From Lenisia limosa (Eukaryota; Protista; Breviatea): DNA of 64,000 bases. The stretch spans positions 71,690-135,689 of the forward strand of contig LPNZ01009878.1 of assembly GCA_001655205.1 (NCBI GenBank), written 5' to 3'. This document shows positions 205-60,016 of this stretch, one piece after another. Made by a program: the position numbers and the translations under genes. Under the pieces are notes generated by a model. That model ran no database searches, had not been told where the DNA came from, and worked only from the letters and a program-made list of their open reading frames with translations. Within the stretch, counting starts at the first letter, position 1; each line of letters begins with the position of its first letter.

Positions 205-980
205 CTTGACAGCAAATCTCGAGGCACATTAGGGATGAGTTCCCTGCAAAAGAATAATCTCGAGGCACATTAGGGATTAGGGATGAGTTCCCCGCAAAAG
301 ACTCAAACAAATCTCACAATGATTCTATCTTAGACACGTCCATTAAAACTACAGAGGGAGATTTATTGTATTGCAAGAACTATTATTTCTACCTTTCCCT
401 TTGCAGGAACTACTATTTAATACAAATCAAAGTATCTACCTTGGTAAATCTCTAGGTATAGGCATGTCTCTGGGCATATCCCTAAAGAGTTAAACCATCA
501 TCGTCATTGATTGTCTTTAAGCCACACTTGTACATGCAGAGGTTTCCAGGAAGGCTTGACTTGCATCAAGAATATTAATGGTATACAGAGAAAGTTTGGA
601 ATTTCAATACCAAATCTCCCCGGGAAATTGCTCAAAACATACCTTGGCATATCTCTGGGCATATCTCTAGGTATAGTATCTCTCGGCATATCCCTAAAGA
701 GCATGATTACTGGTCACAGTAGAGGCCTAATGGAACGAAAACAAAAACTGGTATCCCATTGAAAGTTAAATCACATTTTGCCTGAAATCAGATCCAGAGT
801 TTCACCAAAACAGTTCTACTGCTGAGGCCAATACTTAACGTATAAAGAATATCGATGATCTATTACACAGTTCTTTGCTGAGAGATACTCTATAAAACAT
901 ACCTTGGTAAATCTCTTGGTACGGGTATATCTCTGGGCATATCTCTAGGCATGTCTCTAGGCATATCTCTGGGCATATCC
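205..980 (-). CDS. Four symmetric exons (903-980, 643-693, 440-481, 205-243) encoding a PRDM/PRDL repeat tract of an uncharacterised gene that runs off the left edge
   Basis: On the minus strand each block has an upstream YAG acceptor and a downstream AAG|GT donor. Lengths are 78, 51, 42 and 39 nt, all multiples of 3 and phase 2-2. They translate as DMPRDMPRDMPRDMPRDIPVPRDLPR, DMPRDTIPRDMPRDMPR, DMPRDMPIPRDLPR and ELIPNVPRDLLSR. Confidence 0.65.
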
Positions 981-1179
981 CTGCTTGTAAGAAAACGATT
1001 ACAATCATAATATGCCATAATACATATGTATACTAGTAGTATGATATCCAAAACGATAATATAGCAGATGAAAATTAGAATTATAGGATCACATGTTGCA
1101 TTACTCCAATCTTTCTTGGACCAGGGCTAATATGAGGGCTAATATGAGGGATGACTTAAAGCCCAGCATACTGATTCCC

Positions 1180-3845
1180 TAAATCACGTGAGATGATTCG
1201 AGAGAGAGAATCTCGTTCATCAGGCCTAAAATCGTAAAGAGCACCGCACAAAATGATCCAAAAAAAGAGTCCACCCACCTAATTGGATGGATGCTTGGTT
1301 TGCCGCCCTCAGTCCTGGAAAGTCGCAAATGGAAACCATTCGCCCAGTCAGTGAAGGACCTGCCTCGTCAGACTTGCCCCAAGGCTTTTTCAAATGAAAT
1401 GAGGCAAATTATCTTGACAATGCTCCCACATCATACCGTAAGTGACTATTGACACTGTCAGTCCATGCCTCAATATCCGTCATCATCTCATTGCGATCGC
1501 TGGCCAGGGTTTTTACGACGTCCTCCTAAACTGTTACTTGAATAAATTACTCACCCATGACAAGGATATACACTCTTACGTGATCAAGTAACAACATAAG
1601 AGTATTAACTAGAGAGGCGACAAAACCCCTCACCTTGAGCTCTTCAAACTCCTCCTTGAACTTTGAAGACTTCTCAGCCAAGGCGTCCTCGATGACCGAA
1701 TTGGAAAGGGCTACTGGGTCCTAAATGAAAGTAACTCTCTTTCATTCCTTGAACAAATCATCATGTCAAATAGGTTGCACGAGGACGCTTACTTTGCTAT
1801 GAGACGCCCTTAGTTTCTTGAGGCTGTTTTGGATCTTGGGAAGTAGGTCCCTACATGAGTCATGTCATGTCCAAAGGCAGTGAGAAGCACAGTAATTGAC
1901 GCACCTGTGCTGTGCCACTTCAGTGTGAAGCATTGTGATGTCGGAGATGAGCCGTTGAAACTTCTTGGCTGTCTGCTTCTCATGAAGTTCCAACCTGGTC
2001 TATAGTGTAAAGACTGAGACAAGATAAGACACATCTTTCACTAGCCCGGCAAAATGAAAGCACCAACCTGAAGTTTCATGATGAAGCGCGCAGAGCGGGG
2101 GTCATTGTCCTGACTTCTCTGTTTGATTGCGTTCAGCCTCGCTTGTCTGTCTTTCGTGGTACCTGCTAATTTTTGAGAGCAAAAACATTAAATAAAATCT
2201 TGGGAAACAAATTAATACATTGGGATACGGGGGGGTATAGCCTGACCAAAGCTGGTGGCGTCCAACCTTTTTGCGCTTCAGAGGAGACCGATGGGGCTTG
2301 ATTTCTGAAATATGTATAAAAAAAAAACTTCTTTCAGGAAAAGAAACCAGGTAGTTGTAAAAAACTGGAGTGGGCAAAAATAATATATGGCAAACCACCT
2401 CACGTTTTTGAGGGGGTACTGACAGGTGTAGAGGGGGCGGGAGCGGACTAAACCGTCAGAGAAGACTCTCGGGATAATCATTAACAGTACCTTGGAGGGT
2501 GTGGAGGGGGCTTCGGAAGGCGGAATGTACACTTCTGACGGACTATCTGGCGGATCGTTTCCCTCTGCCAACTGTGAGGGGTTTTTCCAGACAAACAATT
2601 GCATATTAGGTTCACTTGGTATCATGCCGGCCTCGAACTCACCCGTTGGCCATGAAACCGGGTTCTTAAGAGGGTTTGGCGGGAGTGGAGGGATATCAGC
2701 CTGAGTGGTTCAATACACTTGGACTGATATGAGGAATTCTAACATAGCAAGTGCGCATCTTGTGGATATGGTCAAATGAATTTAAATCCCAAACAATATT
2801 AAATTCTTCTTGTTGAAATACTCTACAAAGTTGATCAAAGCCATCAAATCATATTGCAAAGAACATCTACTATGATGAAAGAGGGGCGATAGAAGGTTGA
2901 GTTCGTCCAAAAATAATATTGACCTTGGGGAATAAAGTAGCCATTTCGGCCAGGTCCATTTCATCCATTTCTTCCGGGTTCTCAAGGTCCATGGACTCTT
3001 CGGGGGGTGTTGGCGGCCGAACTATTGGAGGTTTCGATCTGGGGGGGTAAAAAAAGAAAACTATGCAAAGGGAAGGTCAAATTTGATTTCTATCGTACGA
3101 TGGACTAGGTGGAAGGGGAGGGTCGTTGGCGTGATACTCGACATCCATATGTTGAATGTCATTGATGGTCTTTGCTGCCTCCACAGGAGTCGTGTATGAT
3201 CCTGAGTGCGATGAATGCGGCATTTCAGTTCCTTTGTACAGAGAAACCGCACAAAGAAGAAAAGCAAAAAAAATAACCTACTTACCTTGTTGGGGCTGAG
3301 ACTGGGCAATCATGTGTGAGTACAATGAGCTCTGATACGTGCTCCCAATTGGCCTGATGGGATTATCAGAAACGGGCAAAGGGATGTCTTGTGCCCGGAA
3401 GTGGAGTGCACGCATTTAAACAGTAAACTACACACACAATATGTGATCGGTGACAAAGAAATCATTTGAGTTTTCCTAATCCCTGCACCAAACCGTTCAT
3501 CTCGATAAGAGTATGTACTTTGTCGGTAGCGATAGTCTTCAAAACTGAACAATGAGATGATCGCGGCTTTCCCCATCCTTGTTTACCCAATATGAAGAAT
3601 ATCCCCCCACCCTTACAAGCAAGGCACCTCACACCCTTACACATGTATGTAGAGACGAGAAATAAAAACAGATAATACTTGGACAAAGGATATAGTAAAA
3701 GAGTAATTCACACACTCCGAATTATTTGCTTTACAACACTGTGCACACAGCTTTCTGCGTCCCCAGCATACATTCATCAGCAAGATATCCCCCTCCCCCA
3801 CCCTTGCTGTACCGGCGGTTGGCCGTAGTTTGGTGGCCAAGACAT
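1180..3845 (-). CDS. Uncharacterised multi-exon protein with a Pro/Gln-rich disordered N-terminus and a coiled-coil region; may continue into the PRDM exons
   Basis: GT-AG bounded exons translate as MSWPPNYGQPPVQQG, TRLELHEKQTAKKFQRLISDITMLHTEVAQH, DPVALSNSVIEDALAEKSSKFKEEFEELK and EDVVKTLASDRNEMMTDIEAWTDSVNSHL. The 3' end is not resolved. Confidence 0.55.
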
Positions 3846-7300: not shown

Positions 7301-7860
7301 GAAACCTACAAAATGATGCCTCGAAAGTCTGCACGGTGCTTAAAGTCTTACCCTCTAGACCAAGAAAGCAGCTCCATGAAGTCTTTGTTGTCCACTCTAC
7401 TTGGTGGTTCCGAACCGGTTCGTAGCCCTGATTTTTTTGGTGCTAAGTCTGACAATCTAGTGGCTTGGTTCGCGGCTGCGTTCACCTCCAAGAAGTTTTG
7501 GGCAAAAGTCAATTACGTTGGCAAGTTTGCGGAGGGGGAGCCTGTGCATGAGCTTGATAAATTGTTCGATAGTACCCTACCGAAGTCCTGACCATCTAGG
7601 CTCTACGATCTGTTCTCAAGGATTCCTGGCGATGCCATAGCCATTCCCAACTATGTGGTGGCTCATGATAAGTTTGGGGGTCTTGATTCTGATCGGCGCA
7701 TCCCGTTGGCCTCACATTGCAGGTCTCTCCACGGAACATACACTCACATTGCAGGTCTCTTCACGGAACATACACTGCCAAAAATGGCAGCATCGCCCAC
7801 CCTTCAATCCCCACAACCGCCGCCCCTGATACTAACGACCGTGTTTACAGCGGCCTTTAG
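4399..7860 (+). CDS. GDAP2: GDAP2-like protein (macro domain + CRAL-TRIO)
   Basis: Macro domain exons: KISLWDGDITKLSVDAITCSTNESLTDK, IFEAAGPDLAVECKKIGGCKTGEA, KVIHTVGPRFSVKYRLAAENALNSCYRTCLQ and LYFPR...DTGNSEGRTVVEERAVRI. CRAL-TRIO exons: DLSDMEALNVITKEGRGVDGRQIV, VVYVHSAMQTSNEPSTAWLKETYKMM and KKFWAKVNYV. These match recalled GDAP2 motifs in order. An N gap interrupts 5002-5130. Confidence 0.92.
6267..6365. mobile_element. MITE-like element with 25 bp terminal inverted repeats in a GDAP2 intron
   Basis: 6272-6296 (cttccctacggtcccaaatagaccg) matches the reverse complement of 6336-6360 at 22 of 25 positions. TA dinucleotides at 6267-6268 and 6364-6365 could be a target-site duplication. Only one copy is in this window. 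Confidence 0.45.
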
Positions 7861-8204
7861 ATCCCTGCTTGGGTAGGCCTGTTTTGAAATAAAAAATTTG
7901 ATCAACTTTGTGTCCAATAATTATTTTCAAAATCTCTCTTCGTCTCCTTTGATCATTTCAGGATGCCTTGGAGGTTCCCTTTGCTCTGCACCATTTTTGT
8001 ACTTTGTCGATTCTACTGATCTAATAAAATGTTTCCAGCTTTTCAAAGTTCTGCTACTTGTTTAACTGAAACCTGAGACATATCTTCATCTTTCAACCAA
8101 AAATAAGATAACTCTTCCTTGGAGTATCTGGGAGTTGGGGAAGCCTGATGGGTTATGAATAATCTTCAAAGTTACAGCATATAGGCCATAGTGTTTACTT
8201 TCCT

Positions 8205-11200
8205 TCAGTTCACGGGAGCAAAACTGGACTCTCGCACTTCCGACAGAATCGCTGAGGCGCGCTTCAATGTTTTCAGTGTTTCTTTACAGAGCTGAAGGAT
8301 AAGGAAAAGGAGGTGAGCATTGTACCTTTCTCCGAGCAACAACAGCGGGGTCCTCAGCCATGAGTGTGTCAAAGAGGTTGTCTGCAGAGTTAAAATGGAC
8401 AACATGTGGGAGCTGAGAGGAGCTTGAAATCATACCTTTATAGAGCTCCGAAAGGAGGGAGTGCTGCAAGTTCTCTTTGAGATGTGTCACAAGGAAGAGC
8501 ATGATACATTTAGGGATGGCATCCTAAAAGGTGATACTTTGATTGTTGACAAAGCATCATTTGTTGCGTTAATGAAGGTACATTATATCAATTATAACTA
8601 TGAGATATCAGCCTCCATCAAACCTGGACATTTTTCTTCACAATTGCAAAATACGAATCCAGAAGAGTTCCTAAGTTGTAAGGCAAAACTTCAATAAAAA
8701 GAACCAGAATCCATTGTAAAACCTAATAGTTTGAGAATAATATTTCATTGAGTACAAAAATACAAGACAAAAAGATTGGGCATAATGTTAGGAATATATA
8801 CCGGTACATGATTAAATTGACATACTGATAAGAGAGACTTCGACAGTTTCGTTTCCGGAAAGCGTTTCAGGAGCATGTAGAATCGTAGGAACCTGACATT
8901 AAGTTCAGATCAGAGCATTGATTGGCCAAGACAGTCCAAGGAAATCAATCCAAACCTTGTCCATGTTATCGGCTTGAGGTGTGGGAGGTTCTTCCTCCTT
9001 GTTCGGTGCCTTGAATCCAAAGAGGCTCTGGAATATACTGCTTCTACAACATCAAAACAGCGACGCACAAGAGACTATGGTAAAGATAGGAAACCAAACT
9101 CACTTGGCTGGAGAAGTTTGCTTAATCAATTTCGTCTTCTTTTCCTAAAAAGATCAGAGCAGTCAAAGGACCTACACCCTGTTGCTGCTGCTGCATTTCG
9201 GCCATAGCTTCCACTGCGAGCTTCTCCATTGCATCGGCAATAGCCCTGCTTCCTGCACTATTAGCTACCGTATGGGTTTTGTGCATGTTAGTTTAACAAC
9301 TATGATTCACAATCCTCCTTAAATATCTTGAAGACCATTCACACAGAAAGTGATTTCATTTTTTAAAAAATCTCACACTTGCCCGCTCTCATGCAATCAA
9401 ACAAACACTATGGATGAATCCTCAAACCGCCCGTGAAGTCTGGATGATTGGTATTGAAGTAGGTCATTTCCATCAAGATGATGTTACTGATCATTTCAGA
9501 TGTTGGTTTGAGCCTGCTATGCAACAATGCACCAGTGACTTCGTGTAACTTCTCACGGAGATTTGTGAACTGTCTCAATTCCTGAAACGTCAAACAGAAT
9601 ATGCCATGTGACTAATAGTGAACCCTCAAACAGAATATGCCATGTGACTAATAGTGAACCCTCAAACTGGGGTGTTTGTGTTCTGGCTCAATCTAAGCAA
9701 CTCCTCAAGGGCCAGCTCTGCACACTGAAGGGAAGGCTCTTTCAGAAGGGCTATGAGGTAAGGAAATAGGAGGCTTTTCTGTATGGAATTACATTACAAC
9801 GCAAAGAGAAGTTCCAAAAAGTGAATTTAAGACGCACCAATCTGTCTTTTGGCGAGAAGCTCAAAGGCAACTTCAGGAACGAAAATGCAGGGCTTCGGAC
9901 CGGTGGCGTTCTTGACCGCAGTTCGGATGTCACTGAGGTCAAATTTTGCAAATTGGGTGAGTGTGGTTCAGGCAATAAAGATTATTAGTTATTACAAAGA
10001 CTTCATATGAAATTTTATGCTACGATGCTTACACCGGAATCCCACTTTGTACAAAGACCCTCGAAAGCAGAGATCTTTGCCACTCTCTTGAAGAATAGTT
10101 CATTGAAAATGTAGTTCAGCCTGGCTCCTCCTTGCCTGAAACATCAGCAGAATCCAAAAGGCACGAAAGGTCCCGATACCCACAATTCCTTGGTACTCAG
10201 GTCAGGGTTTCGACCGTCAATGGCATCACGGAAGTCTGACGAGTACTTTGTCAGAATTTGAAGTAACAGTGCCCCCTATCAGGTGAAAACAAGACGAAAG
10301 AACTGGCTTCCCGCCTCTCAACAAACCTTGCCCGATTCTGATTCGAAAAAAGGAGACGCGTAGCTTGACAGCTCAGTCTGAGTTTCGAGAGTCATTCGGT
10401 TCACTTTGTCACGGACCTCGGGGAGGCAGGACCGAATGTGGTGCATCAGAAGCTGAGCAATGAGTTTTTGATGTGACAAGCCCCTCAAATATTATTGTCA
10501 TTAACTCGTGGAATACCTTGGACAAAGTTGACGCCAGGTAATGAGTGCCACATCTCGAGGCAATGTTGCGGTACGCACTGTGGGTACTGAAGAATTCCCT
10601 CTCCGATTTTTGGGCCTAAACGTTTATGATGGAGAAGGTTCAATAAAAAAGAAATCAATCATGTCAACTCTCATACCGCCCGTATGCTTTTGTTGTTGTT
10701 AATGTCACATTGCGACCTATTGACGACACCAATAAAACCAAGTTGCAACGGGACAACTTTTCCAAGAAGAACTTCCAGAGCTGGAGAGTAAAACACGCTA
10801 CAGGAAAATCTGTTCAGAATATTTCCTCATGATAAAAAGCTGTAACGAGGAGGAAAATAGGGAAGCATCAGAAAATATGATCAGCATAGTATAATAATCT
10901 TGATAGCATCTCATGGGATGTAATCATTTTAAGAAAAACCCTCACCAGTCTTTATCCATGAGATCAACACCCTCACCATCAGTTCCTTTATCCATGAGAT
11001 CAACCTTGGTGAGAACTCCAATCGTTCGCATGCCTAAATGAGTAAGTAGAAGAATCCTTGACAGTATTTTATGATTCACATCCACCATTTTACCAGTGTA
11101 AAACCCCCACCATCAGCATCAACCGTCTTGGCAAGCGACAACGCATCACTGTTCGCTATGTCGGTATTGGCAGAGGTAACGGCCAGAATGATGCATTTTG

Positions 11201-12206
11201 GGTTTGCAATAAACTTCAAGATCATGCGCGTGATTTGTTTCTCAATATCAGTTGGCTGATCACCCACTGGGACCTATTGATGTGAAAGGGCGTTAAGATT
11301 TTCAGAGTAGCGGTGCTATGATGTCCCATAAACCACAACTTATAACAAGATAAAAGACAAATGTTCAGTTCAATGTGAGTGTGAGTGTGTCAGGGTATTG
11401 AGACTAAATTACGAAGAGACCCTCACGGCAACTGTCTTTGGCCTACTTTCGTGATTCCTGGTAAATCAACGAGTGTGAGATTCAAGACGAATGGGGAGCG
11501 GATTTTCAGATAAATGGCCGTGTCGGAGATGCCCTTTGAGGATCCTGAAACGGTTAGTTCTATCGCCGCAACACACGATATGGATGAGATTATATATAAA
11601 AAATCAAACAAACATTGAACGTAACGACAATACCCTTCCCTCTTGTTTTTATTGCTATACCCTATCTTTCAAGGTAAACGAAAAGGAGTGCTATTATGAG
11701 AGAATTAACAAAAAAAAAACAGTTGAGTTTTATTCGCACCAGCAATCTCAGCTGTTCGATTGTCAATCTCTTTTCTGATTTCTGTAAAATCACGGAACTG
11801 CTTGTTTGGAAGATGCGAAAACTCCCCCCATTCTGTGTCCTCTAAATCCATGAGTTCAGTTCAGTCTGAAGGTGCAATATGGTAAACGGTATAAGCCGTT
11901 ATGCATAAATTAACCCCTTTAACCTCCAGGATGTCGTGATTTATCTGTCCATGGCAGGTTAATGAGCTGTAGGACAAGCGGGCAACGCGTAACGATACCG
12001 GTTCCTCTAGGAAGAAAGTCCCTTCCAACAAAAGCTTCCAATACAGATGATTTTCCACTACTTTGAGACCCAACAACGGCAATTTGAGGAAGATCAATAG
12101 GTTCACTATTTAATGTCGAGAAGACCTCCTGTTAAATGAATTATATAGACTTGAAAATCGTATTACCAACCTGAAGCTTGTTAACCACCGGGATTAGAGT
12201 CTCCAT
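8205..12206 (-). CDS. Dynamin-related GTPase, Drp1/Dnm1- or Vps1-like
   Basis: GTPase domain: [71 protein letters not shown] and [11 protein letters not shown]. Middle domain: [16 protein letters not shown] and [12 protein letters not shown] ends [24 protein letters not shown] saw no PH or PRD domain. Drp1 versus Vps1 is not resolved by eye. Confidence 0.95.
9590..9667. repeat. Tandem duplication, 36 bp x 2, in a dynamin intron
   Basis: tcaaacagaatatgccatgtgactaatagtgaaccc occurs twice, followed by tcaaac. Confidence 0.95.
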
Positions 12207-12564
12207 ACTCCACTCTTATTTTTGTGAAAAGATTTACTCCATTAAATACACTCTAACTCTGTGCTTCTTAATCAAGGAGATATAGTTAGCTATTATTATA
12301 TTCAATATTATTATTTAAAATTTTTGTGTTATGCGATATATAAGATCAAATGATCATATAACTGAATGGGAAAACAGGAAAAATGGAAAATCCAGGGAAA
12401 TTCTCGGGAAATTCTTAATAACTTTATATAATCTAATAATAATTAATAATAGTTTAGTTACACATATTAATTTAAAATTTGAAAAAATGTCCAGGAGTGA
12501 CCGGTGAAGAGTGCTTCCTGGCTTCCCGCCTTTTTTTCTGTAGACCTTTCTAGAGGTCTTCACA

Positions 12565-15500
12565 ATGTCTCAACTACGGGATGATAATTTTGATGTAAGT
12601 TTGGGAGAGACTACCCGATTTGCTCTTCTAGAGTTCTAGTTCCACGTTGTCATAACGAAGTATTCACCTCGAGCACTTTTCCTGGAGCTTTACTTTTTTA
12701 CTCTTTCAGGACCCTTCACTGATCGATAATGAGATCAGTGAACAGCAGTGGAAGAGGGGTGCTATCAAGCGTGTCCGTGTGCAGAATTTTATGACCTACG
12801 ATCAGGCTGAGATTGAGATGGGTCCTGGACTTAACTTTGTAAGAGGTTACTTGTATTCACTATTTTGAAAATTTGTCAAGCTAATATTTCAGATTTTGGG
12901 TCCCAACGGTACAGGTAAATCGTCCCTCGTCTTCACTATTATCATTGCCTGCCTTGGTAAACTCAAAGTTTGTGGCGCGCCTTTCTTCTCTGTTGTGGTT
13001 AAGGCTTCACTTCGGACCATAATATCGATATTTATCAAGAATTTATTGGTATTTATTCATGTTGAACCAAGCACTAGTTGTACGTTGCCCCCTCCTGCTA
13101 ATAAGCGAAGAGGCATATAAACAGTTATTATAAAGAGTCACAGTTTAGGACCATGAGAGAGCTGACAGTTTGGGAGGGTTTGTAAAAACGGGCTGTGACG
13201 AGGCTTACGTGGAGCTAACTCTTCATGACGATGAGGCTAAGGTGAGAGTTGTCTTTGATCGCGCTTTCTCCTTTTTCTTTTTTTTCTTTCCCTCTATATT
13301 TTCTTCCCTTTTCCGCTTGAGTATCCTCTTGTGACTTCTTCAAGCATAGTTGCACAGTAATGGGAAGATCCTTCAAAGCCACTGGCGGATCAAGTACATT
13401 CTTCATGAACAGCAAGCATGTCAAAAAAGAACTCTATGTAACACGCCTCGCTGATTATGGGATCAAGGTGAGAGACGGAACTTTCTCTCCCTTTTGGCAT
13501 CGCAGGATGATGACAGTGCATTTATGAATCTAGATTGACAACAAGTTCCAAGCCTTGCCCCAGGAAGAATTGGCTCGAGTGACGCAGTTCACGCCCCCTG
13601 AGTTACTCTCTCATCTCCAAGATCGTGAGGAGAGGACGGTGCTTGGATCGTGAGGAGAGGACTGTGGTTGGAGATCGTGAGGAGAGGACAGTGGTTGGAT
13701 CGTGAGGAGAGGACGGTGGTGGGATCGTTTTCTTTCCTAACACAGAAGTGATTGACCCTCAACTTGTTGAAGAACAAAGCACACTAGCTAACTTCCAAGA
13801 GTCAATGAATAGGAAAGCAAAGGTTGGTGACGGCAAAGGTGGTTTTACTCCTTAGGACTTGGCTTCTGAGGAGAAGAACCAGGTGATTCTGACTGACAAA
13901 TTCACAAAGGTACGTTATTGCTTCTCTTTTTCTTTCTTTTCATTCTTTGCCTTCCCCTTTTCATTGTCTCCAGGTTGAGGAAGAATACAATCAGTTCAAA
14001 GAATTAGAAGGCATGAGAGAAAAGGTAGTATTGAGTGAATGAAGTGACTTATTATTTCAGCACCAACAACTTGAAATGAAGAAGCCTTGGCTAGAGTATC
14101 ACGAAACCACCAAAACTGAAGCTTTGGTATGCGTTCTTCTTTTCTGTATCAATTTCTATACCTCCCTCCACTCCTTTTTTTAAAATCTTTTAGGCGAAGG
14201 AAAAAATGGAAGAAGCCTTGTCGGAATACCAGGAGAAGCAGAAGCCGCTGGAGCCTTTGAAGAAGAAAAAGCTGTTTGTGCTGTGCATGTCCTTGCGAAT
14301 TGACCGTGTAGTGAGGCGAAAAAGGCGTTCGATCGTACGCGGCCGAAGGAAGTCGACCGCAACCAGCCCAATAGTCTGGTTCGCCACTTTGCCAACAGCG
14401 TTCGCACCATCGACCCCAACATTTCGGTATGCATTTCAATGAAAATGCCTCTTCTTACACAAAAGGGTTTCAAAGAGCAAATCGAAGAAGCTGAACGATC
14501 TGAGAAAAAGTAGGCTCTAACTGCCAATTATCAAATGAAATGTGACTTGAATATAGCACACAGTAGAACTATTTTGTTACAATTTCAGGAGAGTAAAGGA
14601 GATCGAAAAAGAGGAGGCGCGACTAGAGACTATCAATATCAAAATCAGGGAGTACCAAATGCCTGATGAGAGTGTCAAGGTTTGGGGAGTGCCCTTCAAA
14701 TGATAATAGAGGCTCTTCGTGTCTTGACTTTTTATAGAGGCATTTGGACGAAGAAAAATACAACCTTAACAAGGAATCGGAGGAAATTGTCGCACATATG
14801 CGAAGGTTTGAGCCTGGCCTTGTGACTCCCTCCCTCCCTATCCTTTTCCTCAATGCTGCGTTTCATCGTGATTTCACATAATTCATTTAATGGATATTAT
14901 ATTCTTTGTGGCTCTGGTCGAATTTTCAATTTCTCATTTCCCTGCAGATGTGATGGTGACATTCGCATTATTCAGAATTCAAAGAGTACCCTCGAGAGAA
15001 AGTTGGCCATTTTTTGTGACCTTTTCCTTTCTAACGTTACAGTATCAAGGAACTCAATAAACACTCCAATTTCCGCGAAGACTCTTTTGTCAGTGCTAAG
15101 AGCATCAGAGGCGCACGTGAAATCGGGACCTGCATCAACGCTATCCGGTAAGCATGGCCTGTCAAGATCTTGGTGAATGAGAGCGATTTTGACTTCGCAG
15201 ACATGGAGTTAAGAACGGAGATCTTCAGTTGAGGGGACGCTTCTTTGAACCTTGTGTCCTCTCAGTGGGCCAACACAGATCAATATCTGATATGTATTCA
15301 CATAGTATTACTTTCTATGGTTTTTATGATATTTTTCATAATAAAAAGCATGTTGTCTGACAATAACAACTTATCGGTAGTTTTGTTTCACTTATCGGCC
15401 TCGTCTTTGAGGGAAAGAAGTTGTTTTGATTGTTCCAGATAAATTTGGTGTCAAATGCCCCGAAGCTTGCGGCGTCTTGGCTTGAGCACGCTATTAGTCA

Positions 15501-18500
15501 GGACATCCAGAAGGTTTGCTCACTCCCTTTTAGCCAATTTCACACTTCAGGCAATGTATTTTGAATTTGGTGAAGACTTGAAAACAGTGCAAAACTTTGT
15601 CAATAGGAGCGTCTCCAAGGTAGGGGTGTGACAGGTTTTAACTCATTTCTCTCAAAGATGAATTTCACATAAAAGCTCAACTGCCACCACTATTTTGTGC
15701 TGCATCTTTGACGTTTTTCAGTCGGTTGCATCTCAAATGGTGTATGTCAGTTATGAAACCGAGAGGGAATATCCCGATCCTGCTGATCGCGCGGAGGTAT
15801 GATATTAACTGTTTTCTGTTATCATACATGCCGAATGACTAATTGCATCAGGTTAAAGAATTCGGTGTTCATGGCTTCCTTTCAGACCTCTTTGAGATGG
15901 ACCCATTCCACAAAAAGTGTATTTTAGACAGAACACAGCTCCACAGAATTGTAAGCCTTTTGATTATCCCTTCTCTCAGTCCTAAAATCCAATAATCTTC
16001 TTATTCTACGTGATTCTCTTCCTCACCACCCTATTCCAGGCGTATGGTAATGACATCAAATACCAAGAAATAGGCAAGCTCACAAAAGGAAACATTACTT
16101 CAGCGTATTACGGCAATAATGATATTGTGACAATGAAAAAGTCCTACTACTCTGGCGAAATGGTGTATTCGACAAAGTTTGAGGGTCGCCATTCTTCATC
16201 TCTTTAGAACTTTGTTATACATTTGCTTACCATATCCAGGACTTTCTTCAAAAAACCGGAAGTCATTACCCCCGNNNNNNNNNNNNNNNNNNNNNNNNNN
16301 NNNNNNNNNNNNNNNNNNNNNNNNNNNNNNNNNNNNNNNNNNNNNNNNNNNNNNNNNNNNNGAATGAAGAGAAGATTCTGGCCTTGCAGCGCCGAATGGA
16401 TGATGCTGACACCAAAATCGCGCATTACAAGGAGTAGGCTCGTGACCTAAGTGCTGACATTGCAGGAAGCAACGCGAAATGAAGGGACGACTCGCAGAAA
16501 TCAATGACCACATCAACAGAAACAAGGAGGCTGGTGTAGGCTGGCCAGATTCTCTTTGTTGTGTGCTGTTCTGAGCCAGATTTTCTTCCTTGTATGCTGT
16601 TCTGATTGCTGTAGAGAAGTTATCAGCGCCAGATCCATGACCAAAAGAAGTTGTTGGGCCAAAAATGTAGGGGCAGGCTGCACGTGATTATTGTGTTGTG
16701 TAAAACTCTTCTCATATAAAATATTCTAAAATCGGTTTTTTTTGACATAATAGCAACTGCTGAGGAAGTATTGAATACAATTCGCAACCAACCTTCAGCG
16801 GAAGAAGAAATCCGGAAGGTGGGTCTCTTTATCTCTTTCTATCAAGCTTCCGTTTAAGTCATGTTTGATATCATCCAATGACATTCAAGAATGAGGAGAA
16901 CATTGCTAAAGTGTGGGCAAAATACAACGGCAAGCCAGCAGACCTCGTGGTATGTTTACGCGACTGAATGAGGCAATCGCTGACGTTCTAGAGTGCTTTG
17001 ATTCCTGGTCTTGAGAAGTACAGCAAGAGACGCACCGGTCTCATTCGGAGAGCTGTCTGCAAAATCGAATATGAGAAGGTCGACTCGCAACTCAAACACC
17101 TGGAGGTTGCTGGGGTGAAAACGGGCTTTTGTGTGTTGCTTTTTATTTTGGTTTTGTTTTTTCAAGGATCTGTTCAATCTTACCATTTGGTGTTGGCTGT
17201 TCATATGAAGATTGAGACTGACTTTGTAGAATATTATCGCAGAATTCCGTCGCCAGTTCAACATCTGTAAGCCTCCAACAGAACCAAGCCTTGTCCTTGT
17301 TGTTAACTGTTTAGCGAAAGACGCACATGAAGAGGCACATACACAGATGATTAATGCACGCACCGTAGCCAACAACGTAAGAAATGAGCCTGATTGAAGT
17401 CGGTTGAATATTTATGCCATCAGGTCTGGCCCTACGAAAAGAACGGCGAAAAGGAGATTTATGACTCTGTAAGTGATTTATGGTGTTCTCTGACGTTTTA
17501 GCTCCCTGACAACCTTGCTGAACTCACCACAACTCTGATTCGTATAGCAGCCCAAATTAACGTAAGTACTGTTTTTCATATTGTTAAACCCTTTACTTTG
17601 GTGACCATCCCAGGCCGTGCACACTGGTCATCGTGATATTAAAGCAGAGTTCGAATATGCGAAGGAGGCACTTGCTGCTTGTGTTCGAAAAATCAAGGAA
17701 ATCTCAATGACGATCACAAACACTGGGGTGAGCGTGATAGTCTTGCCTTTTGTTGAACTGATGATCTCTATTAAAGCAGTTTTTCACCCCTCCCCCTAGG
17801 ATGACATTGTCCGCCGTCGTAAGGCTTGGGTCAATGAAGTGGACTCCATCGTGGAGCGTGCCAATGAGAGCTTCAAGGAAGTCGTGAATTACATGGACTT
17901 CAGCGCCTACCTCGAATTCGGTTTGCTACTGCTTCCTTCCTTCCTTCCTTCTTCACTTGCTTGTCATTTTGCCTTGTTTATTCTCCAGACAAGCCCAAGG
18001 ACTCTGAAAAGAATGACTTGTTCAATGAGTTCGGCATCAAAATCATGGTTAAGTTCCCGCACCACACTGAGCATCGTGTTTTGAGCAGTAGGCTTCGTGT
18101 TGCAACCCTGTCTTTTTTTAATCAATCACGTCTATTATGGGATGACAAAGATGGGATCATAGCTTGACATTTCAGCGATGGCACAATCTGGAGGAGAAAA
18201 AGCGATCTCCGTTATGTCTTTCCTTCTCGCTCTCCAAACCGTGGCAAAGTGTCCATTTAGATTTATTGATGAAATCGAACAAGGTGGGGTTGTAAAAAAA
18301 ACTTATTATGAGTATTACTCCCCACCTTTCCCGTTCAGTTTTTATTTTTTACTTTTCAGGCATGGATAAAAAGAATCACACGATGGTGTGGGAGGCCATC
18401 CTCAAAACTACCAGGTCGCAGCATTCCCCCCAGGTTTGTTTTAACTTGTAACTCATGCAATAGTACTTCATTCTCACCCCCAAACTGCGTGATGGCTTTA

Positions 18501-18906: not shown

Positions 18907-21900
18907 TTAGATCTGCAAGTAGGACGCGGGAACAACTCCTCTCCGCCCTCTCAGCGACACCTCAACCCAACCATCGCCGTCAGGCTGAATGGTCAGAAAT
19001 CACCTGGTCATATGGACTTTGTCTTTAAATAAAACTAGGCACCCGCCTCTCCAGCATCTAATAAAACTAGGCACCCACCTCTCCAAGCATCTCCACGTTG
19101 TCACCCGGCTTGATTGACAACTCGCCTGGACCAGAAGACGCGTATTCATAGAGAACTTCAGTAGATGCTGACACTATTGCGACTGAGCAGTTAGACCAAA
19201 AACTGCCTGTGTTGAAATGTGATATTTCAGCAAAGATGAAACATTTCAGTTTAAGATGATATTTCAACCCCTCACAATCGTCCATTGTTGAAGCTCCTAC
19301 GGTTGAAGCGCCCATAGTTGCGGTGGTAGTGTTATCATCAAACTCTTCGAACGAACTAAACCGTCAGAAGAGGTACAAACCCAGCTTACGGTGACGGTTG
19401 AGGCTTCTTCAACTTTGAGGTTGGATCGGTCTTCCTGAAGGCAACTGCAACCACTGCCCCAGCCACTGTGAAGGCACCAAGAGCTCCTCCCTACAATATA
19501 AGACCACTTATGTTGCTGCAAAGCGTTTATTCAAAAGACCTGCCTACAACGAGGGTCGTAGTTGAGATGCCATCATCGCCTGCGTTGTACTCTTCCGCAA
19601 TAACGGGTCCAGTGAACTCGACCATCTTCACTCCTAGGGTGTTGCATGAGAGACAGAAAACATGACAGAGTATTGTCACCCAAATCATGGCAGCTGACCT
19701 GAACCGAACTGGAGTTGGACAGAGTTGGACGACCAAAGGCCAGCTACTGGGGCAAAGAACAGATCAACGGTGCGGTTGGAGGATACCTGATTTGTCAAAG
19801 GGCTACTGTGCCGCTTTCACCATGAAAATACAGCATGACATAGGCAGGGTGACCATACCGAGGGAAGTGGACACTCCGCGTAACCATTGGAGGCGCTATA
19901 CGACCCAACTGTCGTACTGAAACCCTCGGATTCATGTCCATATCTAAATGATTAGCTCTTAACAATCCTGAAATGAATTCATATCCTGATGTCTGAGCGG
20001 AAAGAATCCTTCCCATACCTGCAAACACCAGTAGTTGAGTCTCCCATGGAGTCAAGGTAGCGACCAAAGATGCGAATGGGGAATCTGGGAGGTGGGGGAG
20101 TGAGATAAAGAAAGTGTCAACAGTTCAGACTAATAGATTGTAGTCCTCCGCTCACTCTGCACCAGTCAAGGGGACGATATTCGGTACTGCGGCGGACAAA
20201 ACGGGGGCAATCACAACCTTGACCTTGGTCGTGAGCTATTACATACATACGTAGCCTCTTATTTCAATTTAAAGAGAGCCTACCTTGACACCAGCACCTG
20301 GGGCAGCACCAGCCTGGCTGATGGCCATCGTCGCACTTCCTACGGTGAAGGTCAGAATTTGCAAAGAAGGAATTGGAAAAAGAACGGAAGATGCCAAAAG
20401 CCAAAAGCCAACCCAGGGTCTGAACAGCCACAGTTGGACACGTGACTTTGAGGTTGGCTGAGTCCTTGGTGCAGGCAGTCGACGAAATATCGGCGCTGTT
20501 CAAAGTGACCGTTACTGCTGATGATCTGCAAAATGGGTGAAAATTAGGCTTGGAAGGTCAAAAGAGAACAGGAAAGAGAAAAAGATCTGGAAGAAGAAAG
20601 AAAATTAGACAAGGAACAGTATTCCGTTGACATACGGGATAGCATCAACGGTGAGAGTGATGCTGGAGGCCTCGTTGGCAATGAGGAATTTCGGAGAGGC
20701 GGCTGTGACTGTTGTTGTTGATGCTGCAGTACCACACATATTATTGGTGCAACTGGGAGAGGTCATCATCACATGATGGTAGGTAAACATAATACAAGAA
20801 ATGGTTGAAGTCCATGAAGCTAACGTGAGAGATCCCGAGCAATCGCTGTTTTGGAGACAACTGGTACGACACTTGCTGCTGCATGCGTAGTTGTAGCAGG
20901 AAATGACCGGACTGTTTAGTCAGTTTTGATATCCAACCCCCAGGCAACTAGAATACTCCGCCAGCAACCTGTCAACGCACGATCCGGAATAGCACGCGCC
21001 CTTAGGAAGGAACTCGTCTGCTGTTGTTGAGCACATGGCCTTCCCACAACTCTGGCCGTCTCTACTTGATTGGCAGTATCCTGAACCGCATGATTGGCAT
21101 TCCTGTCAAAGTGAGTGTGATGTGGTTAAGAATAGTAAGCTTTCCCTTAGAATGCATAGTGCCAAAACAAGTCCCAGCCTACCCCTCCACACGCCTTGTT
21201 GCAGCACATGCCCGAGGCGCAGACGCCACTTTGACACTCACTCTCCAACTCGCAAGTCTTGCCATTCGCCTGAACATTGAGGATGGTTTTGAGTGGTTAC
21301 AGGAACAATATTATAGTACTATCGTCAAGAAGACAACTCAGACCTTGAGATTGGTGTCGCAAATGGGAACAGAACAGACATCGGCAAGGACCGGGGTGGC
21401 TAAGCCTGAGTCTTGACAGAGCGATTGGCTTCAGTGTGAAACAACAAAAAATTGAATAAATAAATAGAAGCAGAAGTCTAAAATTTTAAATAAGCAAATC
21501 AAAGCGGATAACATATGTACCTGAGCTCCGTGGCTAGACATGCCTGCATACCTGACTTCGTCGCCATCCTCATTGACGCATACTGCGGTGCGGGAGCGAT
21601 GGCCATCGCCTGAGGCGCTGCATGCTGGAGCGCAGGTTGAATACACCGACGTCAACCACATGTAGTGCACCTCTGGGGGGGGGGTTAGACTCCAGGCTTG
21701 AGATCACAAGATCACGCACCTGAGCAAGCTGTGCCGGTCCAGGACCCGTCACTGCCACAAGTCATTTCGGTCTCATCTCCATCTGGCCCTGAGGAGGCTG
21801 CACGGAATCCTGCGGGTGTGAAAAGAGTCAAGGGGCTAAAAGAAGAAAAAGTGTCACTAACCCCTTGTAATTCCAAGTAGGCATACCTCTGTTGCAAGTG

Positions 21901-45429: not shown

Positions 45430-45499
45430 TAAATATATCTTCACTTCACAATTTTAAACTTCAAAAGGTGACTTTTCATGTTCTCTTTGACCGTTTCAT

Positions 45500-46950
45500 T
45501 CACTGACATTATCTAATAAATCGCACATACCTTGTAAAACCATGGTGACTTCTTGGAACAATTGAGACCTTTCAACTTCAAAAAAATGAAGTGACTTGAA
45601 CAGCTCAATGGAAGCCTTGAAAATAACTTAGGTTTGGACTCACAGTATTATGTAACTTAATTTTGGCCATAAATGATTCAATCTTCCAGTCAGTATTCTC
45701 CAAGGCTAATTAGTTGAAGGCTCAAACCATATCCTCCTGCGAGAAGAATAGAGTTCTTTGCAAAACTACACCTTCTTGCTCTTTTCTCAGCAACCATAAC
45801 GTTAAATTCAACTCAAGTCAAATAAAAGGATAAAACTGCTTTGATTCTTCATCATAAAACATATTGACATCACCAACAATTCCTAGATATGAACAAATCA
45901 TGAAAACCCAACCGTCAATATTTTGAGTTTCAGCCGAATCTTTAATTAAAAAGGTGATTTCTACTATTAGTCAAGAAAACTTACTATCTGAATCCTCTTG
46001 CCATTTTTGGCACATTTCCATGTCTTCTTCAAGAGTTGGAAACTCATCCATTCCTGTGAAGGTGACATTATCAAGTATAATTATTCTAAAACCAAGAGAT
46101 GAAAAGGAAATCAATTTTTAAAATGTTAAAGACATGACAAAAAAGTGTTGGTGCACTTTCACCAATCACCAAACCTGTTAAATGGGCAATATCGCTATCT
46201 TGGAGCCAGGCATTATACTGCTCAACATGGCAAGGTAGATAAGGTATCAACGAAAGCCGTTTCTAAATTAAGGAACTATCATTTTTGAAATTAACTTTAT
46301 TTTATATGATACGTAATATATGTACTATGTCTACTATATCTCATATATTAGTATACCAACTAGTATCATAATTATAGATGCAACATTCCCCTAACTCTTC
46401 CATACCTCGCATGCCGTGAGGTCCATTTCACTGAAAGTCAATCCGTTCAGAACCTTTTCAACAAATTTTTTTTATTACAAATGCAATGATACGTTAATGT
46501 ATCAATGAACCAAAGGGCGGGGGTGGGGGGTGTAGATGTATCAGGATGTATCTGCCCTGTCTCTGTGATAGTGGGTGAGGGTGAGGAGTGAGTCTGGGGC
46601 TGGCTGGGGGGTGAGAGTGTGAGGGTGTGTNNNNNNNNNNNNNNNNNNNNNNNNNNNNNNTTGTTGTTAGTAGCAAGTTGGTGGTCCCAAAATGGGCATG
46701 GGGGGTTTATAATGCGCCTTATTATGAAATTTGAAGAGCCCGTAGCCGTGCCGTAGGTGGTAACTTGAAATAATTTTTTGGGGAAATTTTGAAATTGAAA
46801 TTTGAACAATAAGTTGACAATAAGTATTTAAAACAGTTAAAAAAGTAAGTATAAATGTATAAAAGCTGTATAAAAGAGTAAAAATACAAGTTATCAGGGA
46901 AGTCTCGAGAGAAGGGAGTTTCGCCCACAACTGGGAACTGGGCACCTTTC
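45500..46950 (-). CDS. Possible uncharacterised or degenerate spliced gene
   Basis: Exon-like pieces with GT/AG ends: VLNGLTFSEMDLTACE, EQYNAWLQDSDIAHLTGLVI and IIILDNVTFTGMDEFPTLEEDMEMCQKWQEDSD. The downstream part has many stops and there is an N gap at 46631-46660. Confidence 0.3.
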
Positions 46951-47052
46951 CCCCTCCTTCTTTTTAAATTGTACTAACGTAGTGGTAAAGTGGTAAAATA
47001 TACTGGTTGGTAAGAAAGAGACATCAGCAACAACAAAACTACTTTTACGATC

Positions 47053-55368: not shown

Positions 55369-55379
55369 TTACATACGTT

Positions 55380-58330
55380 TCATGATTGGGCTTGAATTGA
55401 AGCAAATAGCTGTCTGACTTCTTCACCAACCTTAAAAGGTAAAAATACTGTGGAGCATTGCTTACTTTTAGTCTGGCTTCCTCTTCGTAATGAAGCTTCA
55501 TGGTACTGAGTTGTGTTTGGTAGTTCTTGATATGTGTTAAACAAGTATTACTCACCTCTTCAAGCTGTAGGATAAGCTGTTCGTGTTGAAGTTTTTCTTG
55601 TTGATGCACTTCATTCAATTGTTGAACGGTTTCATTGATACCTTCTTCCTTAGCTGTCGCAATTCGAGATTCTAATTACATTTATTCCAAATACCTAATT
55701 CCGTCATATCAACAGTGGTGTCCCTTGAGTCACGTATTTCAGCCTCAATTTGTTGCTTCATTGTTGAATACTTGTGAAAAATGAAAGTTACCTTTGTGTT
55801 ATACTCAACCACTAATGCCTTTTCTGCCATCGCCATTTGAAGTTCAAGCTCTTCAATTTTGTCTTTCCAATTTTGTCTTTCTTTATTCAGAGTTGTCAAA
55901 TTAAAAAAAAACAAACCCAAAAACCTCCATTTCATTTTGACTGCTTGCAGTGATGTGCAACTGCTTTGTTGACCATTCTTCCTGCGCTCTTTCAAAGCCA
56001 ATTTTTTCTCCATCTCTTCTTGCTTGAAGGGCCTGAATAAGGAGGAAAAACGCACTAAGTTTTGGGCATCTTCAGCTGAGATACCACCAATACCCTGACC
56101 AGATTCAGCCTGCAAAGCTCTTTTCATCCATTCTTGAACTTGCGCCAACATTAAAAACACAATACAAACCTGAAGATTTTTGATCATTTCCTTGTTGGCA
56201 ATATCAATTCCATTATTGGTGGCGATCTAATTAGAGAAAACCCAGAACAGTAACAGTCGTTGCGCCAATTTCAGCTTTCAGCTTTTTGAGCTCAAAATTT
56301 TTGTTTTGAAGAGCTTCTTGACATGAAGTTAATTCAGCTTCACAGTCCTTCATTCTAGAAAGGGATGCCTGAAAAGATGAGTATCCCATACTATAAAACA
56401 ATAATCCAATAGACCTCTAAAGAGGCAACCTTAGTATCCCATACTCAATAAAACAATAATCCAACAGACCTCAAAAGAGGCAACCTTAGTATCCCATACT
56501 CAATAAAACAATAATCCAACAGACCTCTAAAGAGGCAACCTTAGTATTGAGATCAAATATTTCAGATACTTGTGAGCTAGTTTTGGATTCTATTGTAGCA
56601 AGTTCATTTTGAAGGTCTGAAATGCGACTTTCATATTCAGCAACCTGTAACGACATTTGATGGGTCGTTTCCTTATTTTTGACCAATTCATTCTAAGGAA
56701 TAAACAATTAAATCGCCTACACTAAAGAGAAGAGCGCTCGCCTTTTCCTTTTCAACCTGCTCAAGAGCCTCTTTAAACTGCTTTTTGATACTTTTCATAT
56801 CCTGATCGATATCTTCTGCAACATCAGTTGTTTTGGACTGAATGCTTTTCAATACTCGTTCCTTTGTTAATTACTATCACAACTTCAGCCTCTTCGAGAA
56901 CAGCCTCATCCACTGAATCAAAAATAATTGTTTCACGAAGTTCTTGTCTAACTTCATACTGCAGCTCTCGTCTCAGCTCTGCTTTGACAATATCAGTCTG
57001 CTCAAGTCGAACCTATTGTTAACATCAAATTGAGAAGAATAGACAGTCAGTTCCCATAACAAGCTAATCTGTATGGTACTTAAAAACTGTACATTATTTC
57101 ACAAGTCTAGAATAATTTTAAAAAACGGCTCGTAAGTTGGCTGCATATGATAGTGAGTAGAATGTGATGAAATTACCTATTCATATTGATCCTACCTCTT
57201 CAATTAGTTGAGGGTCAGGGGTCAAAATCAGGCTTGTTTTAACTTCTTCTCGCATCTACAGAATAAAATTTGGTTATAAATTGAATACAGTGCTAATACA
57301 ACATAAGATCATAAATCCCCTTTCATATAAATGATAGAATATGATAATAAATTATATAATACAAAGACGAGGTAATTCACAAGAAATACACCCTCCACCT
57401 CTTCTTCTAAAGCCTCTCTCATTTCTTCTCTCAGTTCATTCATCACTGAAAAGTGAAGCGACTCCCGAAGTTCAGCACGAATACAATGTTGTTCACTTTC
57501 AATCAGAGATGACTGAATATCTTCCAAATTGTCAAGAGCAACACTTGTTTGGACCTGAGTTAACCAATTAAATTAACCTCATTCTTAACCGTCAGCCACA
57601 AATCTTGGTGAAGTTCTTTTTTTACTTCTTCTTCTAACTCGGCTCTCAACTGGCTCTTGACTTGGTTCTTAAGTTCATTCCTAATAGTAATCAAAGTTGT
57701 CATGTTAAGACTTACCTGAACTCCTCCTCCATTTCCGCAACGACAGCGTTACTCGTTGCTGAGGGTGGAAATGAACTGTTTTTCTGTTTTCTTGCCTGTA
57801 ATAATGTTAAAAGAATACAATATTACATGTAACAAGATATTATCCTGAATATGTGCGTAAGTATTGATTATGGAAAAAAAAAAAAAAAAATCTGTCACTC
57901 TACTGGTACATTAGTNNNNNNNNNNNNNNNNNNNNNNNNNNNNNNNNNNNNNNNNNNNNNNNNNNNNNNNNNNNNNNNNNTTTTTAAAAAAGAGAGATTG
58001 CAATTATATTAATTAACATACTTCTCTCTCGGCAACAACTTTAGCTTCTGAAAGAAGAACGGGGTAGAGGTTTTTCCTTGCTTTTTCCTGGAAATAAGGG
58101 GAGACTAAATATGCTCTTACCTCAAGCTCTTTTGTAATTTCTTCTCTCAATAAACCAGCCATGTTTTCACGCACTTCATCTGTGAAAGATTGGGTTGCAT
58201 GTTGCTGCCCTCTTTCGAATTCTTGAATTACAAGTAAAATAAACAAACCAGTTGACCTTTTTGAAAAGTAGAAAACTATTCCAATTCCTGCAATAATGGA
58301 TGAAGTTATCAACAATGCCACATCAGACAT
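55380..58330 (-). CDS. Long coiled-coil protein with an N-terminal signal anchor
   Basis: MSDVALLITSSIIAGIGIVFYFSKR is followed by many Glu/Gln/Lys-rich heptad exons, e.g. MNELREEMREALEEEVE and SLQVAEYESRISDLQNELATIESK. It ends VGEEVRQLFASIQAQS*. An N gap lies at 57916-57980. Confidence 0.75.
56380..56547. repeat. Tandem repeat, 53-55 bp x 3, spanning a donor site of the coiled-coil gene
   Basis: The unit agtatcccatactcaataaaacaataatccaacagacctctaaagaggcaacctt starts at 56380, 56433 and 56488. Confidence 0.95.
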
Positions 58331-58678
58331 TGTTGAAGAAACGAAACTTGTTGAGAGGCCTCAATAACAAGTCGTAAAGGTAAAGAATGGTAAGAGTTTG
58401 TTGGTTGTTGGGATGCTGTTTCTGTCAATCCTGTTTCGATTCTGTCTACCTGTCTCTCCCTCCTTCGTAACACTTTTTGCGCTTCTTCCTTCTGTTTNNN
58501 NNNNNNNNNNNNNNNNNNNNNNNNNNNNNNNNNNNNNNNNNNNNNNNNNNNNNNNNNNNNNNNNNNNNNNNNNNNNNNNNNNNNNNNNNNNNNNNNNNTT
58601 TTTGATTTTTTGCCAGCCATGCCCATTATTATTAATTAAACCTAGAAGATAGGCCAATCGGATTATTATTATGTTAGG

Positions 58679-60016
58679 CACAATATATCTTATCGCATAT
58701 AATCTTTTCTGTGCTGCAGGATGGTAAGTTCTTTCATAGACGCTCCCTTTTCACTCTTCTTCAGGGGTTATGTCTGGTTTTACCTCATTGAGCATATCTA
58801 CATGCATAAGGAGCTTCCTTCTTTCGAAAATGGTGGGGTTATGCTAAACTAAAGATATGTTATTCTTCAATTTCTCTGTTTTCATGTGTTAGCGTTTTTT
58901 AATCCAACTAAGCTATTCCTCTTAAAACTGACCCTCTTAGCTGAATTCAACCATGTTTGGACAGCAGTCATGATCTCCCAAACTTGCGCCTTGATGGAGG
59001 TGCTTGGGCGGTTTTATTTTTATCACCAATTTGACATATTATTTTGAAACACTTATTGCACTCCAAAATGTCTTAACTGTAAATTAGTCATTCTCTTAAT
59101 TAACTGTAGATTATTCATTTTCTAAATTAACTGTAGATTATTCATTCTTTGGTGAAACTCGTCAGATCCCCTGTTCAAACGACCTTAATGCAGGTCTGTG
59201 AAGAGCTTTTGTCTGGTCCCTATTCACAACATTTTCTTTTTTTTGTTCTCTGTGACCATGATAGGTCTCCTCTCGCATCCTGATTGTTTGGGGCATCGTG
59301 TTCCTTGCTCCTGAGGTGGGTAGTTTTGAGCATTGAGAGGGAAAATATTTCAAATTTTTAACTAATGAAAGAATCTGAATTAAAGTCAGACTGTTAATTT
59401 TTTTAGATGAAGGGAGATTGGGGAGTCATTCTTGCTACTCTTTCTTGGTCTTCTGTTGAAGTAAGTTAGTTGAAGTGATTATTGTTCACTTTCCTTTAGG
59501 TTCCCAGATACATTTTCTACGCCTGGTCACTTGTCTCTGTTCCCCCCTACTTCATGCAATGGATCAGGTGAGAGCTGACTGAATGAAGAAGCTGGTCTCA
59601 TGACATCAGATATTCTCTTTTCTACGTTCTCTACCCAAGTGGCATTACTGGTGAACTTCGCTGCATTTGGGCTGCGCTTCCCTACCTCAGAACATCCAAT
59701 GCTCTCTGTTACCATATGCCCAATATGGTTTGAGGGTAAATATTAAAAAATCAATATGGTTTAATTAGGGTACTTGGCCGTAGTGTAAAACTCTTTCCCT
59801 ATTACCATTCAGCTTAATATGACCATCGACTACCCTACCCTTTTGGTGTGCGTTTTAATTGCTTACATTCCTGGCTCCCCCATGATGGTATGTGGCTTGT
59901 TGGGTTGAATTTCAAATGTCCATTTCTTGTTATGTGTTTTATTATTTGTTTAGATTGGGCACATGATCAAGCAACGTGCCAAGGTTCTCTCAAAGTTTAG
60001 CAAAAAGGAAGATTAA
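58679..60016 (+). CDS. HACD: Very-long-chain 3-hydroxyacyl-CoA dehydratase (PTPLA/HACD/PHS1); start codon upstream, possibly at 58387
   Basis: YLIAYNLFCAAGW, QTCALMEIIHSLVKLVRSPVQTTLMQVSSRILIVWGI, WSSVEVPRYIFY, the catalytic signature RYSLFYVLYPSGITGEL, IAYIPGSP and HMIKQRAKVL, plus a C-terminal KKED ER-retrieval motif. Confidence 0.93.

Follow-up and report, generated by a model that had tools for sequence, protein, structure and literature searches.

Short tandem duplications at exon-intron borders in a 64-kb window of Lenisia limosa: lengthened introns, decoy splice sites, and a probable role for survivorship

Local duplications and the systems they resemble

Microhomology-mediated tandem duplications are widespread, largely neutral, and depleted in coding sequence (PMC13167724). 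According to the Rogers model, duplication of an exonic AGGT gives birth to a new intron that is one unit long (PMC3265369, PMC4974935, PMC2891723), and in work on intron sliding and tandem alternative splice sites, duplicated junctions are the proposed raw material for shifts (PMC2891723, PMC2668829, PMC5010894). Here, we analyzed short tandem duplications in 64,000 nucleotides of DNA from the breviate Lenisia limosa (assembly GCA_001655205.1, contig LPNZ01009878.1, positions 71,690 to 135,689 of the forward strand; hereafter, the window, in whose own numbering all coordinates are given). A first-pass annotation of the window had named nine tandem duplications of 25-55 nucleotides, plus a tentative tenth, on splice sites, and had proposed either a junction-focused mutational process or a survivorship effect. 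We found that the window amounts to a set of partly RNA-verified natural experiments on splice-site choice, in which identical donors or acceptors lie 25-55 bases apart: steady-state messenger RNA (mRNA) takes only the outermost of the duplicated sites in the RNA-verified cases, and introns have grown by 25-175 bases through the short tandem duplications while the protein is untouched.

Arrays were sought with Tandem Repeats Finder (TRF) over the 64 kb, the clean class being defined by units of 25-55 bases. TRF returned 12 clean arrays of 2-8 copies with 84-97% identity, among which are nine of the ten cases of the first-pass annotation, each where it had been placed. The tenth, tentatively set at about 215-298, is not among the TRF calls; inspection of the sequence by eye does find it, at 214-298, as a duplication of approximately 40 bases with a 7-base insertion, and it was added to the TRF arrays to give the 13 clean arrays analyzed below. 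Twenty shuffles of the window yielded no array comparable to these. In the clean arrays, TRF and a self-search of the window find local sequence copied head-to-tail without a spacer, and no unit matches anything outside its own array within the 64-kb window. Because every unit is confined to its own array, the arrays are local duplications and not mobile elements, and insertion of a mobile element or introner was rejected, since the units are adjacent local sequence with no dispersed copy in the window.

Ten of the 13 clean arrays straddle or abut a splice junction, one is wholly intronic, two are intergenic, and none is wholly exonic. Donor arrays are those that start at 9582 (abutting), 10935, 13620, 19028, 27458, and 56380, and acceptor arrays are those at 214, 7711, 26819, and 59073. 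These classes are based on RNA contigs (7711, 9582, 10935, and 13620), on the continuity of an SH3 domain (19028), and on our own gene models and reading frame (the others), and for all ten arrays they are the classes first proposed. Both the duplications and their contact with junctions are real.

The arrays resemble microhomology and minisatellite systems in their local head-to-tail copies, in the 5-6-base repeats that flank some units, in their depletion from coding sequence, in expansion up to eight copies, and in one array (13620) whose copy number varies between assemblies; they differ in that most of them have terminal repeats of 0-3 bases. The main texts of PMC13167724 and of bioRxiv 10.64898/2026.02.28.708716 leave introns and splice sites unmentioned, whereas the tolerated class in the window is largely junction-straddling. 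As in the Rogers model, splice signals are doubled by a short tandem duplication within a gene, and removal of the redundant copy by splicing leaves the protein as it was. Unlike in that model, every case in the window lengthens a pre-existing intron, because removal of the spare copies leaves an array-bearing intron of approximately 46-162 bases. The Rogers signature (an intron start like the downstream exon and an intron end like the upstream exon) was found in 0 of the 335 introns scanned, barring gene-finder artifacts inside arrays; with a prior intron at every site and the signature absent, Rogers-type intron gain was rejected. Intron sliding shares with the window the presence of at least two candidate sites close to each other, but the four RNA-tested arrays keep the ancestral site and only 26819 offers a predicted in-frame alternative. 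The arrays were first likened to the raw material of intron gain and sliding; the window holds no Rogers-type new intron, and none of the four RNA-tested arrays shows a shift.

Splice-site choice within the arrays

Reads were tested over the region 7705-13704 with one DNA run and one polyA RNA run of the same study, both as assembled contigs. The outermost site is used in all four RNA-tested arrays (7711, 9582, 10935, and 13620), in RNA contigs that, being assembled, hide rare isoforms and targets of nonsense-mediated decay. Splicing therefore leaves the mRNA as it was, with the spare copies absorbed into a longer intron; in none of the four has the junction shifted away from the site of the ancestral mRNA. 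The array at 7711-7776 (+ strand; TRF, RNA contig, and a DNA contig from a second assembler) straddles an acceptor with 32 bases x 2.1 (12 intron + 20 exon). With position 7755 as the start of its RNA contig and 7671 as the end of the preceding exon, the intron is 7672-7754 (83 bases; approximately 51 before duplication), and splicing takes the distal one of two identical acceptors. At 9582-9667 (- strand; TRF and RNA joint), a 36-base unit x 2.4 starts exactly at the donor G, has GTTTGA at the unit ends, and occupies the entire intron (86 bases; approximately 50 before duplication), and the RNA joint 9580>9667 takes out the whole array. The donor-straddling array at 10935-11004 (- strand; TRF, RNA, and DNA contig), in a presumed dynamin-like gene, has a unit of approximately 36 bases (28 exon + 8 intron), and its spare copy has a 5-base deletion with the GT still intact. 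The 56 bases left by RNA contig pieces between 10780 and 11110 fit exon 10977-11033 with intron 10781-10976, which places splicing at the first donor. At 13620-13728 (+ strand; TRF and RNA), 25 bases x 4.2 (4-5 exon + 21 intron) with GATCGT at the unit ends straddle a donor; the RNA stops at 13624 and restarts at 13749, and the first of several identical GATC/GTGAGG donors is used, with all spares inside the intron 13625-13748 (124 bases; approximately 47 before duplication). That intron is closed by a tandem acceptor, CAGAAG (13743-13748, +), of which the distal AG is used, as the restart of the RNA indicates; our own gene finder picked the proximal AG, 3 bases upstream.

The three other donor arrays are all on the - strand. 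At 19028-19092 (TRF, SH3 profile, and sequence), 32-33 bases x 2 (14 exon + 19 intron) extend the intron 18985-19078, and the spare copy differs by GT>GC and by the loss of one base. The flanking exons correspond to SH3 profile positions 2-25 and 28-49; since these halves are contiguous, the exons join without room for the spare copy. The array at 27458-27658 (TRF and sequence) has 25 bases x 8 (approximately 7 exon + 18 intron), with GG for GT in four of the seven spare copies, within the intron 27390-27651 (262 bases; approximately 87 before duplication). At 56380-56547 (TRF, frame, and ENA contig), 55 bases x 3.1 (23 exon + 32 intron) have intact spare GTs, and ATACT recurs at the unit ends; the array-bearing intron spans 56369-56524 (156 bases; approximately 46 before duplication), and the frame runs from ...KVASLE into a hand-found exon at 56255-56368.

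Among the remaining acceptor arrays, the by-eye case at 214-298 (- strand; approximately 40 bases x 2) has the working TTTTGCAG acceptor of exon 205-243 in its downstream copy, and the upstream spare copy, which holds the 7-base insertion, reads GCGG (AG>GG); the intron is 244-439 by our gene model. The array at 26819-26958 (- strand; TRF, sequence, and frame) has 42 bases x 3 (17 intron + 25 exon), a unit that is a multiple of three. Its frame predicts that the first AG would lead to a TAG stop, that the second would add 14 residues, and that the third gives the ancestral reading. At 59073-59148 (+ strand; TRF, sequence, frame, and ENA contig), 27 bases x 2.8 (9 intron + 18 exon) end the intron 59000-59136: copy 1 has AG>AA, copy 2 keeps its AG followed by a TAA stop, and copy 3 holds the working acceptor. 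The exon reads IIHSLVKLVRSPVQTTLMQ, which we take to be similar to 3-hydroxyacyl-CoA dehydratases.

Judged from sequence and frame, splicing at a spare site would shift the frame at 7711, 10935, 13620, 19028, 27458, and 56380, and would meet a stop at 9582, at the first AG of 26819, and at copy 2 of 59073, in agreement with the earlier remark that some surplus copies would give stops; the sole exception is predicted to be the second, in-frame AG of 26819. Changes of the kinds reported for surplus copies are indeed seen, but "often" is too strong a word for them: spare dinucleotides are disrupted in four of the ten junction arrays (GT>GG, GT>GC, AG>GG, and AG>AA) and intact in six. Approximately four independent disruptions in approximately 42 dinucleotide positions roughly match what the 3-11% divergence between copies would give; this offers no case for selective silencing, and an excess decay of spare splice sites was rejected.

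The three arrays away from junctions complete the clean class. A 31-base unit x 2.1 at 16541-16605 (+ strand; TRF, own gene model, and sequence), absent from the first-pass list, lies wholly within the intron 16536-16614 (79 bases), leaving 5 bases on the donor side and 9 on the acceptor side, and copies no splice site. The other two are unstranded and come from TRF and the ENA contig. One, at 28638-28689, is 26 bases x 2 in AT-rich non-coding sequence upstream of an ADAM-like gene with no junction nearby, and is intergenic under the stricter gene model. It sits within a longer, imperfect local repeat (28578-28749) with ATCATACATTGGTTACTTAA...TACA on either side, which suggests successive duplications in the AT-rich spacer. 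The other, at 31620-31714, consists of 28 bases x 3.4 and contains a sub-duplication of 18 bases; it lies in AT-rich intergenic sequence outside all gene models.

Junction contact, survivorship, and rival explanations

Ordinary local duplication, tight spacing of junctions, and selection against exonic events probably explain most of the pattern; survivorship is sufficient, and a junction-targeted mutational process is not needed. The duplications would have arisen by replication slippage or by microhomology-mediated duplication, and some two-copy events may later have expanded as minisatellites do; higher-order growth is seen in the 52-base period at 13620 and in two interleaved unit variants at 27458. 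Such duplications are reportedly readily reversible (PMC8639346). Terminal microhomology of 5-6 bases, three examples of which had been pointed out beforehand, is present in four of the 13 arrays (GTTTGA at 9582, GATCGT at 13620, ATACT at 56380, and TTTGC at 214; chance approximately 0.001 each). With a junction every 85 bases or so in genes, a 25-55-base duplication often straddles one. A wholly exonic duplication would cause a frameshift or inserted residues and would be removed by selection, and wholly exonic clean arrays are in fact absent (0 of 13, against 16-27% expected per array; joint probability approximately 0.04). A junction-straddling duplication would be tolerated because the first donor or last acceptor still gives the original mRNA, as the outermost site does in the four RNA-tested cases, and the only junction-straddling arrays seen are those whose outer site still yields that mRNA. 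The spare copy would become part of a longer intron, with its sites as decoys that would persist or decay roughly like neutral sequence. In addition, constraint on the working copy may let junction arrays diverge more slowly and stay recognizable longer, which may explain their dominance in the clean class. The survivorship alternative of the first-pass annotation therefore fits the lack of wholly exonic clean arrays, the preservation of the mRNA by the outer site, the frameshifts or stops that most spare sites would cause, and the geometry of the window.

That geometry was evaluated by placing the ancestral footprint of each array (26-58 bases) at every position of the window. Over all placements, 22-44% of footprints meet a junction; among the non-exonic ones, the share is 30-59%. 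Several points tell against the survivorship explanation. Ten of the 13 clean arrays of this one window are at a junction, with 5.2-6.1 expected (P=0.007-0.027); the figure is nine of 12 when the by-eye case is left out (P=0.014-0.044), and ten of 11, with 6.8 expected, when only genes are considered (P approximately 0.035). Contact with junctions is sharply different between large and small duplications (Fisher p approximately 4e-6), and geometry covers only part of this difference. The null itself depends on our gene finder, which recovers 11-13 of the 17 RNA-supported introns. Finally, the terminal repeat is only 0-3 bases long in nine of the 13 arrays, so that a microhomology origin is not shown for most of them. 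The gene finder misses exons, which inflates intron interiors, undercounts junctions, and biases the null downward. The proposed surplus of junction overlap over random placement thus holds in the window as a modest excess (ten, with five to six expected), and three clean arrays lie off junctions. The further claim that the duplications are systematically centered on splice sites failed: within the unit, the position of the junction ranges from 0 to 78% of its length (Kolmogorov-Smirnov test against uniform, p=0.63), and breakpoints neither coincide with the junction nor flank it symmetrically.

The modest excess is what a mutational process aimed at junctions or introns would produce, one that makes 25-55-base duplications at exon-intron borders and lengthens short introns; error-prone repair of breaks tied to transcription or to co-transcriptional splicing is a candidate for it. 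The clean arrays also include only one that is wholly intronic and two that are intergenic, as compared with approximately four expected in each class. We nevertheless regard such a process as unlikely, because its breakpoints do not coincide with the junction and because the excess is confined to one class of repeats. Duplications with 8-18-base units, which must be very young to be detectable, occur at 19 loci (TRF gave 20 rows, compared with 1.45 in shuffles, and one row that belongs to the 31620 array was excluded), and none, or perhaps one, of the 19 is at a predicted junction, with 2.5-3.4 expected. Degenerate arrays with 20-60-base units (13 TRF rows, ten of them distinct, compared with four in shuffles) are mostly intergenic; when they are pooled with the clean ones, 11 of 22 non-exonic arrays are at junctions, against a null of approximately 0.42-0.47, and the excess is gone. 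The exons missed by the gene finder lower the null, and a constrained working copy should keep junction arrays recognizable longer. The junction-focused process put forward at first is thus not borne out. Its broader form, a border-biased duplication process tied to introns or junctions under which short introns would keep growing and arrays of decoy splice sites would be founded, seems to us quite unlikely. If true, it would continually supply material for intron growth, sliding, and alternative sites, and a modest junction excess that proved to hold across the genome would indicate that splicing and duplication are mutationally linked, with a bearing on intron growth and movement. On present evidence, the window is an instructive case of selection filtering a common type of mutation, not of a new mechanism. 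Selection of another kind, which keeps arrays for useful repeated splice sites (U1-binding decoys for the upstream donor, or in-frame alternative acceptors), could account for the intact spare GTs throughout 13620 and 56380, for the three of seven kept at 27458, and for the unit of 26819, a multiple of three whose second acceptor would add 14 residues and no stop. This is highly improbable in our estimation, given that spare sites are disrupted in four of ten arrays at close to the surrounding rate of divergence, that unit lengths are multiples of three about as frequently as by chance, that outside 26819 the use of a spare site means a frameshift or a stop in every array, and that the RNA contigs of the four tested arrays hold only the ancestral mRNA form.

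The possibility that spare copies are assembly artifacts, such as haplotype variants put in tandem, is the least credible of all, because three assemblers concur: two other assemblies, Logan and ENA, reproduce eight arrays. Logan, the second assembler, gives DNA contigs that match 7711 and 10935 without differences. Its contigs break at 9602-9667, and the unitig depth at 9626-9667 is 70, compared with 37-40 in the flanks, which fits two genomic copies. The ENA metagenome contig ERZ3820729 NODE_210 (36,496 bases) covers window positions 27595-64000 at 100% identity outside bridged gaps and reaches 87 bases past the right end of the window; it is identical across the arrays at 28638, 31620, 56380, and 59073. 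Substitutions and indels between copies are, moreover, those of diverged duplicates. In favor of an artifact, the Logan and ENA assemblies probably share their sample with that of the window, to judge by matching sample and study codes; the Logan contig has one additional 25-base copy (GATCGTGAGGAGAGGACAGTGGTTG) at 13672 (+) relative to the window, which is either a copy-number polymorphism or an assembly collapse; and NODE_210 ends inside the 25 x 8 array, so that the copy number of 27458 is uncertain. An artifact was rejected on the basis of the Logan and ENA contigs and the doubled depth, with copy number at 13620 and 27458 uncertain. The window has seven gaps, one of which (58498-58598) an earlier automated listing had missed, and no array lies less than 175 bases from any of them. 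NODE_210 bridges three with real sequence: 82 bases for the 65 Ns at 57916-57980, 97 bases for the 101 Ns at 58498-58598, and 20 bases for the 30 Ns at 46631-46660.

Gene models, introns, and smaller repeats

The window is intron-dense, with only three open reading frames of at least 150 residues in 64 kb, and Rfam and transfer RNA scans of it gave no match. Our gene finder is a dynamic program over codon usage, splice-site matrices, and intron length, seeded with RNA-supported introns. Its settings were restricted to those giving 0 and 5 introns in shuffled sequence; settings that gave approximately 900 introns per strand were rejected, and looser ones with introns in shuffles were kept out of the null. 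The output is approximately 17 genes with 260-330 introns and the junction spacing of approximately 85 bases used above. Its typical error is to miss exons and bridge them by long introns, for example at 13342-13465 (RNA-supported) and 56255-56368. At 56227-56368 (-), the finder missed both the latter, a 114-base coiled-coil exon, and a 28-base GT...AG intron (56227-56254). The 17 RNA-supported introns (15 listed joints and two from loose ends) are 31-175 bases long with a median of approximately 63, so that the early description of tiny introns of 30-50 nucleotides is right for some and too narrow for the whole; very short introns, down to the 28-base one, coexist with those of 31-175. Gene predictors applied to this genome will be misled by decoy sites within arrays, as our own was at the 25 x 8 array, through which it chained zero-length exons.

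From their translations, we take the predicted genes to include a dynamin-like gene, an SMC5-like gene, casein kinase 2 alpha, a hydroxyacyl-CoA dehydratase-like gene, and an ADAM/thrombospondin-repeat receptor with a terminal SH3 domain; the SH3 domain is the profile-supported identification among them. A search of a representative protein library with exon 27276-27389 of the ADAM-like gene gave only two unrelated repetitive proteins. Three open reading frames from the left half of the window have no database record, and a homology search with one of them gave no match.

The small duplications are mainly intergenic (7-10) or in exons (seven, mostly 12-base in-frame or imperfect), with 2-5 in introns. 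Large clean arrays are distributed in the opposite way, 11 of the 13 being in or at introns. One small duplication, a perfect 14-base unit x 2 at 55854-55881 (-), lies just downstream of a T-rich stretch and has AAAG in each unit; it may straddle the acceptor of an exon missed by the model (...IEELELQMAMAEK...), although no AG there yields a correct frame. Twelve-base coding repeats (GGGCATATCTCT on the + strand; peptide repeats of the RDMP type) run across several very small exons at 205-990 (-), where exons hold two in-frame arrays of 12-base repeats, at 646-668 and 923-983.

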